Source: Amoeboaphelidium protococcarum X5 (Eukaryota; Fungi; Aphelidiomycota). Taken from it: 5,483 nt of DNA. Made by a program: the position numbers and the translations under genes. The stretch lies in contig JALDTO010000188.1 in assembly GCA_023515725.1 (NCBI GenBank), forward strand, positions 1 to 5,483, given 5' to 3'. Numbering within the stretch: position 1 is the stretch's first letter; every line of letters starts with the position of its first letter. The notes beneath the pieces are model-generated. The model searched no databases, was not told the origin of the DNA, and saw only the letters and a program-made list of their open reading frames with translations. Shown one piece after another: positions 1 to 5,483 of this stretch.

Positions 1-131
1 ATGCTACAAAGGAAGCATATGATGCCGTTGACCAAGAATCTGATGAAAGTGATGCCGAGATGAGTTCACTCGACTCTGATGGCGATGATGACCATGAAGA
101 CGATGAAGCCACTGCCAACATGGAGATGTGA
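1..131 (+). CDS. 3' end of a gene running in from the left edge; acidic low-complexity C-terminal tail, product unidentified
   Basis: The frame starting at 3 reads ATKEAYDAVDQESDESDAEMSSLDSDGDDDHEDDEATANMEM-TGA(129-131). It has strong GAN codon periodicity and is followed by AT-rich UTR-like sequence with ATTAAA near 170-182. GTGAGT at 128-133 could instead be a splice donor. Confidence 0.7.
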   Translation, partial: ATKEAYDAVDQESDESDAEMSSLDSDGDDDHEDDEATANMEM

Positions 132-188
132 GTATTGTTGTGTTGTTGAGATACACTAGTTACTGTTACATTAAAAATTAAAGCACCT

Positions 189-194
189 TTTATT
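189..194 (-). terminator. Putative polyadenylation signal for CAPZA
   Basis: AATAAA on the minus strand about 90 nt past the stop, inside the 154-bp convergent gap. Confidence 0.35.
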
Positions 195-285
195 CCCTTC
201 GTATAACAACGTCTCTCTTCCGAAAACAATCACAACCTTATTACATTCTTACAGGCAAAAAAGGGAGCAGCAACCTTCAGCTTAT

Positions 286-1356
286 TCACTACTGCTGGCC
301 CAGATTAGAACCCACCTTGTAGCCACTGATCTTGCTCCATTCAATCTTGTTTCTGGTGACTGGAAGAGCACGGCGGAGACTCTTGAAAGTTGCATCCGAC
401 AGTTGTGCATAACTCTCATTCAGTGCAGACTGGTACTCCACCTCTTCCTCTTTGATACGCTTAACCAGAGCGGCTGCAAACTTTTACGGAGAGTCCTACA
501 TTAATGATAAAATACGAATAAATAACATTTAGACTGAAGATATAACACTTAAAGTACAAAATACTTACACTAAAGTCTACAGAGAAAGAGACATCTTTGG
601 AAGAGTTTAGCTGAACGTTACCATCTTCATAGTAGTGCACCTAGACTTTAATGAAGCCAGTGACAGCAACAGATCCCTTGCCTGATGCAGTAAACACATA
701 CTCAGATCTCCAACGACCATTCCAAAAGTTGGATGGATTGTACTTATTAGAAGCAGTAACTACAGCAATCTTATCGCCGTTGACCATGGTTGAAGAACAT
801 CCATTCACATAGTGTTCATCCGAATACTTTTTCACTTCTACATCCACGGCGGTTCTCAGATCCTCGTGAGAGTGCTGCGATAGCGCCTACTCCACATTGC
901 TAGCAGTCTACTTGATATGGTCAAATTTGAACTTTTACTTTGAGCGAAAGTCAACAAAGGTGCCGTCTGCTTGCTCATTGTATTTAGAGACAATTGCTCT
1001 CTAAGATACGTCCTCCTCATCGTCATTCTAGTTTTCATTCAACTTGCAGGTGATAAACTGCTCAACGTTATAGTCATGAACAGCCTTTTTTATTCCACCT
1101 TATAGCTTTACATCGTCATTAATCAACAGTCGTACATCTACTATATGTTATTATTAATTGAATATTCAACTGGTTTATACATGTGAACACACATACCATT
1201 TAGGACCTACAAGAATTATAACGTATTCAATGTATATAGAGATATTTAGACTCAAAGCTAATTTGAAATAATTACCTCATGAAATTCTCCAGGCGGACTG
1301 TCCAAGATGAATTTAGACGCCAACTTGATCTTTTGCTCCACTGCAACTTCAGGCAT
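286..1356 (-). CDS. CAPZA: F-actin capping protein subunit alpha (CapZ alpha/Cap1), 289 aa; exons 1356-1276, 1206-1197, 1137-569, 495-286; needs TAA/TAG=Gln
   Basis: The spliced translation gives MPEVAVEQKIKLASKFILDSPPGEFHE|VLND|VRLLIND...KFKFDH...NKYNPSNFWNGRWRSEY...IKV(TAG=Q)VHYYEDGNVQL...TFKSLRRALPVTRNKIEWSKISGYKVG...GQQ(TAG)-TGA. These are the hallmark CapZ-alpha motifs. There are three GT-AG introns and exon lengths of 81+10+569+210=870 nt. In-frame TAA at 1100, 935, 484 and TAG at 1028, 1001, 908, 887, 641, 289 (low coordinates). Confidence 0.97.
496..568 (-). other. CAPZA intron 3 (73 nt, phase 0)
   Basis: GTAAGT...TAATGTAG, AT-rich. Removal joins ...SVDFS|DSPQKF in frame. Confidence 0.92.
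1138..1196 (-). other. CAPZA intron 2 (59 nt, phase 1), tandem TAGTAG acceptor
   Basis: GTATGT...ATATAGTAG. Removal restores N-D-V-R-L-L. Confidence 0.88.
1207..1275 (-). other. CAPZA intron 1 (69 nt, phase 0)
   Basis: GTAATT...TTCTTGTAG. Removal restores PPGEFHE|VLND. Confidence 0.88.
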
Positions 1357-1679
1357 TTTAATAAATCGAAATGTTGTTTGGAGGGCAATAGCGATTTCAG
1401 GTACTACACAGCCACTTTAATGATATAACTTCACTGAAAGAAACAGTTTGAAGAAGAGTTTGTTCTGAATGGTTTTTAGTTCGATCGCTCGTTCCGTCCG
1501 TAAGTTGTTTCAAACACGGCGTTCAACACTGATTGACTTTTCGTTCCCATGTGCCTTCACCTGATTGTTTCACCTCAACCGCGTAAGGGCTTTGTTCATT
1601 TAGTCAAATTACAAAAATATGCCATACGTACTTTATATTGGAAACAACAAATTACATACACCATTTATAAAAATTAAGT

Positions 1680-2933
1680 TCACTTCTTTTGCTTTTCACG
1701 CGCTTTCCTCTCGATGTCTCCGTAATTCACCACTCTCTTCTTAGTGGCAGACGGGAATATCTCATAGCAAGTCTTACAGTACGGCTTCTCATCAATGCAG
1801 TAGTATTTACCACCTTCATTCGCCATATTCTTCTCACAGCCAAAGCATACAAAGTGATTCTCACACCATTTTTGGTTCATGATTGGAATAACTACACTCA
1901 TGGATTCACTTATAACAGCGATATGAGCAGCAAATTAATTGAATACAGCTCACCTTTTCCTCTGATATAGTCGAAACAACGACCGCACTTGGAGCCTGCA
2001 AGTTCATTGAAGTGTAGCTCGCAGTAAGGCCGTCCTTGATGTTCATGGAACGTACTAGTATCAAACGGCTATTCACATTTACTGCAGACAAAATGCTACA
2101 CTCAAAAACTAGAGCAAATAATTACTCCAAGAGTTTTAGATGGTGATAAAAGGAATGATATACCTCTGGATGAAACGACTTGCCCATAGCTGTGACTATT
2201 CTGCCGTAAATTGGCTTTTTACAGACATAGCAGGGAGGTGCAGTTGCGCGAATATAGTCTTCAGGACAGTACAATTGACCATTGAACTTCTTGTAGTCCT
2301 TGTTCAACTATTTACTGCAGAGGACGCAGGTGAAGTGAAACGCGTGATGTTTCTGATCTTCATAGATGAGCGTTTCTTCCTCTTTCAGAATCGGTTTCTT
2401 ACAGCGAGGACACTCTGTTTTACTAACCTGGATATCTACTCAGATTGTTGGCACATTAATTACTACTATCAGAATCTATGAAAGACGATCTATAATACCT
2501 ATATTCTTTAGTTTTAAGTGGCATTCTTTGCAGAATGGTCGGTCACCCTTCTTCATGTAGCTGCTGCCTGCCAAAACTTTTCCGCAATGATCACATGTGA
2601 AGTGGTCAGCGTGCCATTTAAGATCCAGTGCGTCGATCATCCTTTCCATTATCAGTTCTCCACATCTGGCGCATCTATCGCCGAATATGGTGTAATAATC
2701 TTGCTCGCAGTACAAATGCTTATCTTCAGCTTATATGAAAGACCCCTCAGGGAATGGCCTCAAACATTCGAAACATCTACACTCCAAATTCTTGCATACA
2801 ATACCATTGTTCAAATGATCCCGAAACTTTATAATTCGACTTACATGAAACATTCCTAATGAAATTTAGACTCCAAAGCGCTGACTGACTGGCTATCAAT
2901 ATTTTCATTACAGTTAAAACAAGCAGTGGCCAT
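1680..2933 (-). CDS. LIMS1: PINCH/LIMS/UNC-97-type five-LIM-domain adaptor, 330 aa; exons 2933-2845, 2776-2499, 2435-2164, 2095-1954, 1891-1680; needs TAA/TAG=Gln
   Basis: Five tandem LIM domains start at residue 5 (CFNC.., CARC.., CPRC.., CYVC.., CGRC..) with no N-terminal LD region. PINCH-like features: PFPEGxF...YCEQDY in LIM1; [25 protein letters not shown] in LIM4; Cys in place of His in LIM5 (KWCENH); tail KPYCKTCYEIFPSATKKRV (human PINCH1 recalled as KPVCKKCYEKFPLELKKRL). Exons total 89+278+272+142+212=993 nt and end in TGA. In-frame TAG at 2856, 2308, 2069 and TAA at 2731. Confidence 0.9.
1892..1953 (-). other. PINCH-like intron 4 (62 nt, phase 1)
   Basis: GTGAGC...ATGAGTGTAG. Joins IRGK-V-IPIMNQKWC. 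Confidence 0.88.
2096..2163 (-). other. PINCH-like intron 3 (68 nt, phase 0)
   Basis: GTATAT...TTGAGTGTAG. Joins FHPE|HFVC. Confidence 0.92.
2436..2498 (-). other. PINCH-like intron 2 (63 nt, phase 1)
   Basis: GTATTA...CTGAGTAG. It contains an in-frame TGA so it must be removed. It lies in the LIM2-LIM3 linker, so the exact acceptor is less constrained. Confidence 0.8.
2777..2844 (-). other. PINCH-like intron 1 (68 nt, phase 2)
   Basis: GTAAGT...TGGAGTGTAG. Joins HQECF-I-CFEC. Confidence 0.92.
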
Positions 2934-3210
2934 ATCAATATATTTAATAGAATTGATCTAAAGCTGACACTAAATAAAGTTCACTTTATACTCGAGCTGA
3001 AGTTGAAACAGTTTGGTGAAACAAGGAAGGAAATTCAGTTGCGCGCAGTTGGAAAAACACATGCAGAACACTTTATCGCGCCTCACCACCTTTCAGTTAT
3101 ACGAATATGATCAATTTATTGAACTTATCTGATACAAGAAAATGGTGTAGTAGAATGCAATTTCTGTATTTTAAATTTTCAATATTACAAGCAAATAACA
3201 TTTAGAATCA

Positions 3211-3627
3211 TCACTTACCAGAGCTTTTCATCGCCAAATCTAACACAGCATCCACTTTGTCCTCGAGGTGGCTGAAGCTTCCACTAAGATTGTCGAATTT
3301 GTCAGAGAGATTCTTTATTTCTGATTTCAGCTCAGACATCTGCTAATTTTAGTTCTCCTTAAAGTCAGATATCTACTAACTTTAGCTCTCTTTAAAGTCA
3401 GATATCTGCTAACTCTAGCGTAGATTACCATTCTTGATCTCATCCTTAAGTGGCGCGATCAGCAAGTTCATCATAGTAAACAGGCAAGCGGTGTGGGTTG
3501 CAACGGCGGCGAGTATAAGTTGAATCGTGAAGCGATTTTTGCGCATATATTTGCCCCAGCTGAGTTCCTACTCTATCCCGTTACTATTAGTATGAACACG
3601 TCTACGAATGAATTGGCGTAAAATCAT
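3211..3627 (-). CDS. Hypothetical 138-aa protein: Arg-rich N-terminus, one hydrophobic helix, then coiled coil with 11-aa repeats; only open if TAA/TAG=Gln
   Basis: ATG at 3627: MILRQFIRRRVHTNSNGIEQELSWGKYMRKNRFTIQLILAAVATHTACLFTMMNLLIAPLKDEIKNGNLRQSQQISDFKESQSQQISDFKENQNQQMSELKSEIKNLSDKFDNLSGSFSHLEDKVDAVLDLAMKSSGK-TGA-TGA. It has 8 in-frame TAR codons, codon-phase repeats, and AATAAA downstream at 3120-3115. GTAAGT at 3218-3213 could be a donor that alters the last residues. Confidence 0.8.
3319..3417 (-). repeat. Three tandem 33-nt (11-codon) imperfect repeats within the hypothetical CDS
   Basis: Minus strand: TAG AGT TAG CAG ATA TCT GAC TTT AAA GAG AGC / TAA AGT TAG TAG ATA TCT GAC TTT AAG GAG AAC / TAA AAT TAG CAG ATG TCT GAG CTG AAA TCA GAA. 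Confidence 0.93.
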
Positions 3628-3843
3628 TTACTAGACTGCTTATACTTGCGATGTCGTCGCGAATGATATCCAGGAAGAGAAGGAAAAGTGTCGCAATACT
3701 TTTGTTCTGCTGAAAACTACAGTAATTTAAGTATTCCCTTTTGCTATACAAGCGTATAATATTTACACAAACAATCAAAAACGTATTGAAGCATTCTTTA
3801 CGCTCAATAGTAGAAAATGGTGTCATAAAGTTCCATTTCAAAG
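3628..3843. promoter_or_regulatory. Short divergent intergenic region (216 bp), probable bidirectional promoter
   Basis: Lies between the head-to-head ATGs at 3627 (-) and 3844 (+) and is AT-rich. Inferred from gene layout only. Confidence 0.5.
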
Positions 3844-4596
3844 ATGTTACCTCCTCAAGTGAGAGACTTTGTGGTCAAGACTCTGGGAAAGAATTGTACG
3901 TCAAAGTTGGTGGATGCGATGGATTTCAAGGATAAGGCATGTGTCAGCCTGGCTGTGAGTAAAGTCGTCGGCTTGGGTATTGTCGCTGGATCTTCGCTGG
4001 TTAAAGTTCCGCAATTGCTAAAGATTGTAGCTAGTGGTAGCGCACAGGGCATCTCTTTGAATTCTTACATTCTGGAGACTGTCGCCTACTGTATCGCTCT
4101 AGTGTACAATTATCGACATGGGAATCCGTTCAGTACTTACGGAGAGTCGATTTTCGTTACGCTGTAGAACTTTGTCATTATCGCGCTGATGTTGTGGTAC
4201 GGTAGATAGGTTGGAACTTTGAGTGTAGTTGTGGCTGCTTTTGCCGGTATCGTGTATGCACTGATCGATCCGACAATTGTTACGGAGAAGTACTTGATGA
4301 TGGCTCAGACAGCCACCATTCCCATCTCTGTGTCTTCAAAGATTCCTCAAATAATTACAAACTATTCGCAGCAATCCACTGGTTAGTTATCATTCCTGAC
4401 GGTAGTGCTCTTCTTTGCGGGCAGCTTGGCTAGAATATTCACCACTATGACGGAGATCAAAGGTGACAAAGTCTTACTGACCGGGTTCACTCTGGCTACC
4501 GTGTTTAATGGAATTTTGCTTTTACAGATGTTTTGGTATTGGAACAGTAAAGGTGTGTCTTCCAAAAAGGTGGCTGCTTCTAAGAAGACCAAGTGA
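3844..4596 (+). CDS. MPDU1: Mannose-P-dolichol utilization defect 1 (MPDU1/Lec35/SLC66A5) PQ-loop membrane protein, 250 aa, intronless; needs TAG=Gln
   Basis: One continuous frame joins ORF-track pieces 3844-4167 and 4405-4596: CVSLAVSKVVGLGIVAGSSLVKVPQLLKI...PFSTYGESIFVTL(TAG)N...SKIPQIITNYSQQSTG(TAG)LS...GSLARIFTT...NGILLLQMFWYWN...KKTK-TGA. It has two PQ motifs and a C-terminal KKxx ER-retrieval-type signal. TAGs are at 4165, 4207 and 4384. Confidence 0.96.
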
Positions 4597-4620
4597 TTAG
4601 CTACCTCTTATTTCGAATAT

Positions 4621-4626
4621 AATAAA
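4621..4626 (+). terminator. Putative polyadenylation signal for MPDU1
   Basis: AATAAA 24 nt after the TGA stop. Confidence 0.45.
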
Positions 4627-4734
4627 CTGCCTTTTGAGACGGCTTTAGTTAAAGAATTTTTATTTACAGTGTTCATCGTCTATACTATACTAGACACGCG
4701 CAACGAAGTTTGCTTTTTTTAATAGAGAAAATGT

Positions 4735-4788
4735 ATTCATCTCCATGGAGATACGCGTAATTCATCTCCAAAAAATTATTCATCTCCA
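4735..4788. repeat. Three copies of ATTCATCTCCA plus a 14-bp perfect palindrome
   Basis: Copies at 4735-4745, 4760-4770 and 4778-4788. ATCTCCATGGAGAT at 4739-4752 is its own reverse complement. Confidence 0.75.
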
Positions 4789-5132
4789 AGTCGATTTTTA
4801 AGTTCGGGCTCGGCGTACATTTCTGAGAAATGTTTCACTAATTTGTCAAAACGTCTACAGCTACTTTTATACACACCATAGTCAATTCGAACTGAATACC
4901 ATTTGGAAGTGGCTTGTCGATTGTTATTCAGAGCTTGTCTAAGTCTGTTAGTACTACACAATTTGTCGCCGTGTATGGAATTCATGCACTGTAGTTATTT
5001 ACAGTATCTGAATACTTGTTATGCATGAAATGGCGTTCAATGCCGCTAAGCATTTAAGCGTAAGAGAATGGTGGTTTAGATACTACGATCTATAACTGTT
5101 TTGATACATACAGTATACCTTACAACAAGCAG

Positions 5133-5483
5133 TCATTCGTCTGGACGAGTCGAAGCTTTGAGCGTTTATTCCCAATCCACTTCCTTAAAATGTTGGATTA
5201 ATTTGAGTGGCCATGTCTTGTCAAACAAAAACAAATTGAATATGTAAGTGAACCTTTTATCCAATACTTAATAGCGGCTGCAGCTCGCAACTGTGAGTCT
5301 TTCAACTCTCATGATAATGTGGAAATATGAACTTACCTGGCATGTCCGAAAATCCACTTTAGATGGACAATCAATCTTCCGCTTGCTTAAGTTATAGTTA
5401 TCAAACCTGTTGGGTTTTATGTTCTGTCGCTAACCTTAACCGTCGTCTCGGATAAGGAGAAATTTGCTACGCCACTTTGTTTC
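5133..5483 (-). CDS. Possible 3' part of an unidentified minus-strand gene entering from the right edge
   Basis: The frame is open for 116 codons under TAR=Gln (ETKWRSKFLLIRDDGQGQRQNIKPNRFDNYNLSKRKIDCPSKVDFRTCQ...FLFDKTWPLKLIQHFKEVDWEQTLKASTRPDE-TGA). A strong CAG|GTAAGT donor at 5336 suggests it may be spliced differently. No recognised motif, and long frames arise easily with a single stop codon. Confidence 0.35.

Follow-up and report, generated by a model that had tools for sequence, protein, structure and literature searches.

Glutamine at in-frame UAA and UAG codons: rediscovery of the table 6 nuclear code in Amoeboaphelidium protococcarum

Four genes on a contig of the aphelid Amoeboaphelidium protococcarum X5 (GenBank assembly GCA_023515725.1, contig JALDTO010000188.1) contain TAA and TAG codons within their reading frames, which raises the question of what these codons mean in this genome. 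The stretch analysed here, referred to as the window, comprises positions 1 to 5,483 of the forward strand, and its four intact, expressed genes carry 18 TAG and 6 TAA codons in frame (together TAR, where R is A or G) next to 29 CAR glutamine codons (14 CAA and 15 CAG). As suggested by our analysis, the nuclear genome uses translation table 6, in which UAA and UAG (UAR) are both read as Gln, and we place the probability of this reading at about 0.96. The same proposal had been made in a first-pass annotation from the letters of the sequence alone, and it is now borne out by conserved Gln columns, by codon exchange between two subgenomes, by tRNA genes, by RNA contigs and by changes in the release factor eRF1. 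The code is already known for A. protococcarum, so that the present result is a rediscovery.

The gene models were obtained by six-frame reading combined with the intron joints seen in RNA contigs, and Pfam was run on the stop-free pieces. Read-through versions of the models, with X at each TAR, were used for counting and local alignment. The features of the window to which the argument refers are the following.

1-131, forward strand: upstream gene with an acidic tail, 3' end only; frame +3 is open to a TGA at 129-131, and the other subgenome copy (L071) has the same end
286-1356, reverse strand: CAPZA, F-actin capping protein alpha, 289 codons, 9 TAR (6 TAG, 3 TAA), TGA at 286-288; PF01267 on pieces
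1356-1276, 1206-1197, 1137-569 and 495-286, reverse strand: exons of CAPZA, with introns seen in RNA contigs
641-643, reverse strand: TAG at the Gln of the CAPZA motif KV-Q-VHYYEDGNVQL
1680-2933, reverse strand: PINCH-like protein with five LIM domains, 330 codons, 4 TAR (3 TAG, 1 TAA), TGA at 1680-1682; PF00412 on pieces
2933-2845, 2776-2499, 2435-2164, 2095-1954 and 1891-1680, reverse strand: exons of the PINCH-like gene, with four GT-AG introns in RNA contigs
3211-3627, reverse strand: ORF3 (open reading frame 3), an orphan of 138 codons that combines 11-residue repeats with a hydrophobic stretch, 8 TAR (6 TAG, 2 TAA), TGA at 3211-3213; covered by contigs of two spliced (RNA) runs
3844-4596, forward strand: MPDU1/PQ-loop protein, 250 codons, intronless, TAG at 4165, 4207 and 4384, TGA at 4594-4596; PF04193, 1583 relatives
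4348-4350, forward strand: CAA in the second MPDU1 PQ motif, where the other subgenome copy has TAA; Gln in 103/109 homologues

The recount from these models agrees exactly with the earlier hand count of TAR and CAR codons. The individual codons cited in that annotation (TAG at 641-643, 4165-4167 and 4384-4386; TAA at 1100, 935, 484 and 2731), and its five TGA gene ends (129, 286, 1680, 3211 and 4594) were likewise correct. The RNA contigs show GT-AG introns of 59-73 nucleotides (nt). The TAG at 289-291, directly before the CAPZA terminator, is one of the 24 TAR codons and is no evidence by itself. A TAR directly before the terminal TGA was seen in both copies of CAPZA, in both copies of a small gene (L027/L028) and in a peroxiredoxin-like gene, there in one of the copies; these cases are too few to speak of enrichment.

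The meaning of TAR can be read from positions at which protein families keep a Gln. In an alignment of MPDU1 with 111 homologues, Gln makes up 80% or more of five columns; the window has CAA or CAG in three of them and TAG in two, and the two TAG columns hold Gln in 103/109 (94%) and 92/109 (84%) of the homologues. Opposite the TAG of the CapZ motif, the partner of the window in the other subgenome has CAA, and the partner residue is aligned to the Gln of solved CapZ-alpha chains. The early observation that TAG falls on Gln positions of family motifs stands. For TAA, the MPDU1 column in the second PQ motif, with CAA in the window and TAA in the partner, is the best single proof that the codon means Gln.

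The genome of A. protococcarum is duplicated, with gene pairs of about 90% DNA identity, and the partner of the window, on contig C146, is 90% identical to it. A genome-wide duplication has been described for the published assembly of 24.7 Mb in 258 scaffolds (PMC10608142); the assembly searched here holds 23,646,343 bases in 346 contigs, and splitting at gaps probably accounts for the smaller total. Codon exchange between the subgenomes was scored in 17 coding blocks with a total of 3,059 aligned codon pairs, the work drawing on 229 kb of genome DNA. The blocks were picked for mostly synonymous change, with TAR outside the criterion, so that the non-synonymous baseline is somewhat lowered and TAR is not favoured. 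At codon position 1, exchange of C and T was found in 14/140 cases for TAR/CAR, compared with 25/206 for the leucine codons CTR/TTR (p-value 0.6) and 2/738 for non-synonymous exchanges (p-value 3e-10). The result holds separately for TAA/CAA (6/41, p-value 4e-7) and for TAG/CAG (8/99). A TAR codon that differs between the copies stood opposite CAR in 20 pairs, opposite the other TAR in 7 and opposite anything else in two. This shows that the four TAR and CAR codons behave as a single synonymous family in evolution.

The decoding machinery points in the same direction. The nuclear genome carries two tRNA genes with the anticodon CTA and two with TTA, which are 93% alike, share 69-73% identity with nuclear tRNA-Gln(TTG) and reach at most 50% with the tRNAs for Glu, Lys, His, Arg and Ser. 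Judged from these likenesses, a single Gln-derived ancestor of both kinds would be the simplest reading. tRNA-Gln(CTG) was not found among the 63 tRNAs scored, a list that is a lower bound. In each subgenome the CTA and TTA genes share a contig, at a distance of 15-21 kb (L061/L062 and L069/L070; contigs C158 and C200), and the ARAGORN drawing gives them an unpaired T-C at the first position of the acceptor stem. Both copies of eRF1, which are themselves full of TAR codons, carry the substitutions T58A, S60V, L124M and L126Q (human numbering) and keep GTS, E55, NIKS, S70 and the Y-C-F residues. The QFM_F set, which makes human eRF1 UGA-only, contains L124M and a change at position 126 (PMC3632111), and reduced recognition of UAR by the altered eRF1 is therefore plausible. 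In the mechanism that we propose, the tRNAs with CUA and UUA anticodons, derived from tRNA-Gln, would insert Gln at UAG and UAA, their charging with Gln being suggested by the likeness to tRNA-Gln together with the codon evidence; the substitutions in the stop-recognition motifs of eRF1 would weaken the recognition of UAA and UAG, so that termination would fall mainly or solely to UGA. tRNAs with UUA and CUA anticodons and an altered eRF1 had both been predicted from the window alone. For each of the two anticodons a pair of genes is present, with tRNA-Gln(TTG) as the closest kind, and both stop-recognition motifs of eRF1 are indeed substituted, in keeping with the UGA-only specificity that was expected. 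Since all 17 long open reading frames of the mitochondrial genome (contig C346, 28,427 nt, 22.6% GC; L074-L076) end in TAA, the code change is nuclear only. On the same mitochondrial contig cox1 lies in several pieces.

The source of the DNA is clear from its proteins. A search with a stop-free piece of another locus gave two proteins, both of A. protococcarum. The translation is identical over 222 residues to KAI3638978.1 (MIR68_003476, A. protococcarum), which has Q at TAG, and accessions of the KAI363xxxx range belong to strain X5 (PMC10057920). Together with the duplicated genome this agrees with the organism guessed at first, and an unknown host lineage was rejected. UAR as Gln in this species is stated in PMC5304391, PMC6299283 and PMC11687900, all citing Karpov et al. 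2013 (PMID 23058793), and the NCBI proteins of the assembly have Q at TAG already. As the source is a species whose code was published in 2013, the suggestion of an unreported code change, which the first-pass annotation had kept for another opisthokont host, is refuted.

Some points weigh against the table 6 reading or limit its support. The Q at TAG in the NCBI protein was itself produced by translation with table 6 and offers no independent proof, and the subgenome exchange test is limited to its 3,059 codon pairs. A poor fit with strict table 6 comes from the sequence KKCVVM followed by TAA, a candidate terminus present in both subgenome copies of one gene (C136:319132 and C244:237731). 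A prenylation tail is functional at the C-terminus only, and the KKCVVM-TAA pair is therefore a real hint of termination at UAA. This bears on the claim that TGA is the sole stop. TGA closes 5/5 visible genes in the window and, in motif searches of the genome, histone H4 (4/4), actin (3/3) and H4-linked H3 (4/4), 11/11 together, and the gene ends seen in the paired loci are TGA as well; that part of the claim holds, and its extension to the whole genome is put in question by the two KKCVVM-TAA sites.

UAA, and perhaps UAG, might accordingly have a dual meaning, being read as Gln inside genes and as a stop near the poly(A) tail. Such an ambiguous code would add to the table 6 reading and not replace it, with UAA ending a minority of genes and UGA still the dedicated stop. 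Its support lies outside the window, and we consider it tentatively, at somewhat less than even odds. Besides the typical prenylation tail in both subgenome copies, it can draw on 20 tails of the form basic-basic-Cys-aliphatic, which were followed by TGA in 10 cases, TAA in 5, TAG in 0 and TGG in 5 (control 8), despite a prevalence of TAG over TAA in the coding blocks (101:41); the retention of GTS and NIKS in eRF1 is also in its favour. However, the window needs no such ambiguity, the H4, H3 and actin genes end throughout in TGA, and in the peroxiredoxin-like gene TAA is the last codon before TGA, the other copy ending in a Gln codon. Ambiguous ciliate codes, reportedly described by Swart and co-workers in 2016, show depletion of the codon near gene ends. 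In A. protococcarum TAR made up 2.35% of codons 6-20 and 2.21% of codons 21-80 before the TGA ends, a comparison of low power (34 gene ends, including duplicates) that gives no sign of depletion. The gene-end scan took TGA ends only, so that it permits no count of TAA ends, and a search for HDEL followed by a stop gave 15 matches compared with 18 in the control, which is chance level.

The remaining alternatives fare far worse. TAA and TAG could differ in meaning, with TAA standing for Glu, Lys or Tyr, for example, and the lower number of TAA codons does leave fewer sites for a test. The significant TAA/CAA exchange, the seven replacements between TAA and TAG, the second MPDU1 copy with its TAA inside the invariant PQ motif, and the close likeness of the UUA tRNA to the CUA tRNA make separate meanings very improbable, and this candidate was rejected.

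U-to-C editing or splicing could also take the TAR codons out of the mRNA, a possibility that the first-pass annotation had itself named as speaking against its reading. Two public runs yield spliced contigs and are therefore RNA. In run X9 the spliced contig over MPDU1 (3800-4526) shows 0 differences from the DNA, TAG codons included, every joint is an ordinary GT-AG intron, and tRNAs for TAR exist. As the same codons are present in the DNA runs of two samples and in spliced RNA contigs, assembly error, editing and splicing are excluded as far as contigs show. Contigs drop rare variants, and partial editing could hide in this way; with T kept at TAR in the RNA contigs, removal from the mRNA is highly improbable and was likewise rejected. 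Least probable of all, and rejected, is that the genes are pseudogenes or the codons sequencing or assembly errors: one copy could decay in a duplicated genome, but TAR stands in both copies (eRF1 and pelota among them), frameshifts are absent, substitutions are mainly synonymous, independent DNA and RNA runs agree on the codons, and cognate tRNA genes exist.

Among known systems, A. protococcarum as treated by Karpov et al. 2013 is the same species with the same code, the strain being X5 by accession range, with no difference in the code itself. With the table 6 ciliates (Tetrahymena, Paramecium, Stylonychia), Hexamita, Streblomastix and the ulvophytes, the aphelid shares UAA and UAG as Gln, Gln-derived UUA and CUA tRNAs, and eRF1 changes in TASNIKS and beside YxCxxxF. 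It differs from them in the independent origin of its code in an opisthokont and in its eRF1, which has Q instead of F at position 126 and keeps T122 and S123. Another aphelid, Paraphelidium, uses the standard code (PMC6299283). The context-dependent codes of Condylostoma, Parduczia, Blastocrithidia and Amoebophrya would be alike if KKCVVM-TAA is a true terminus; unlike these, the aphelid has UGA as a dedicated stop and, at the low power of the 34 gene ends, no depletion of TAR near them. By every feature tested except UGA as the only stop, the aphelid code fits the table 6 kind. It is a rare opisthokont case of a ciliate-type code, for which the duplicated genome provides a clean internal test of synonymy, and if UAA also terminates, a partly ambiguous code would stand next to the fungi. 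For annotation, the nuclear genes need table 6 and the mitochondrion a code with TAA as stop, as standard open reading frame calling hides most proteins.

Several further observations concern the genes of the window. RNA contigs place the CAPZA poly(A) site at about 171 and confirm a CAPZA microexon of 10 nt (1197-1206). The introns between 496 and 2844 end in GTAG in 7/7 cases, and three PINCH introns end in GAGTGTAG (intron 2 in the register of the RNA contig). ORF3 contains 33-nt repeats in its DNA; it matched no Pfam family above cut-off, and a search with a piece of it found no homologue, a result made weak by the length limit. The other subgenome copy lacks the 675-nt segment that contains ORF3, which in the window is bordered by an imperfect direct repeat of 33 nt (3132-3164 and 3807-3839, 76%). 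Degenerate ORF3 paralogues that carry a frame shift and share about 50% identity occur on contigs C62 and C155, where they adjoin a subtilisin gene and a tRNA-Gly, and ORF3 is possibly a small orphan gene that is mobile or prone to recombination.

Downstream of MPDU1 lie three copies of a 12-mer (4735-4789 region), and from 5408 on, reads of several other loci join, the contig ending in a repeat. Elsewhere in the genome, the ribosomal DNA (L072 7875-9215, contig C233) holds a second 5.8S copy and small-subunit fragments between the small- and large-subunit genes (5.8S search, Rfam), and on C233 a 5S gene on the opposite strand adjoins the large-subunit gene; the arrangement on C233 may be either a real partial duplication or an assembly artefact. 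The window sequence or close relatives of it are present in metagenomes from biofilm, sediment, freshwater and soil, with a large share (0.68) in run X5 only among runs X5 and X13-X19.

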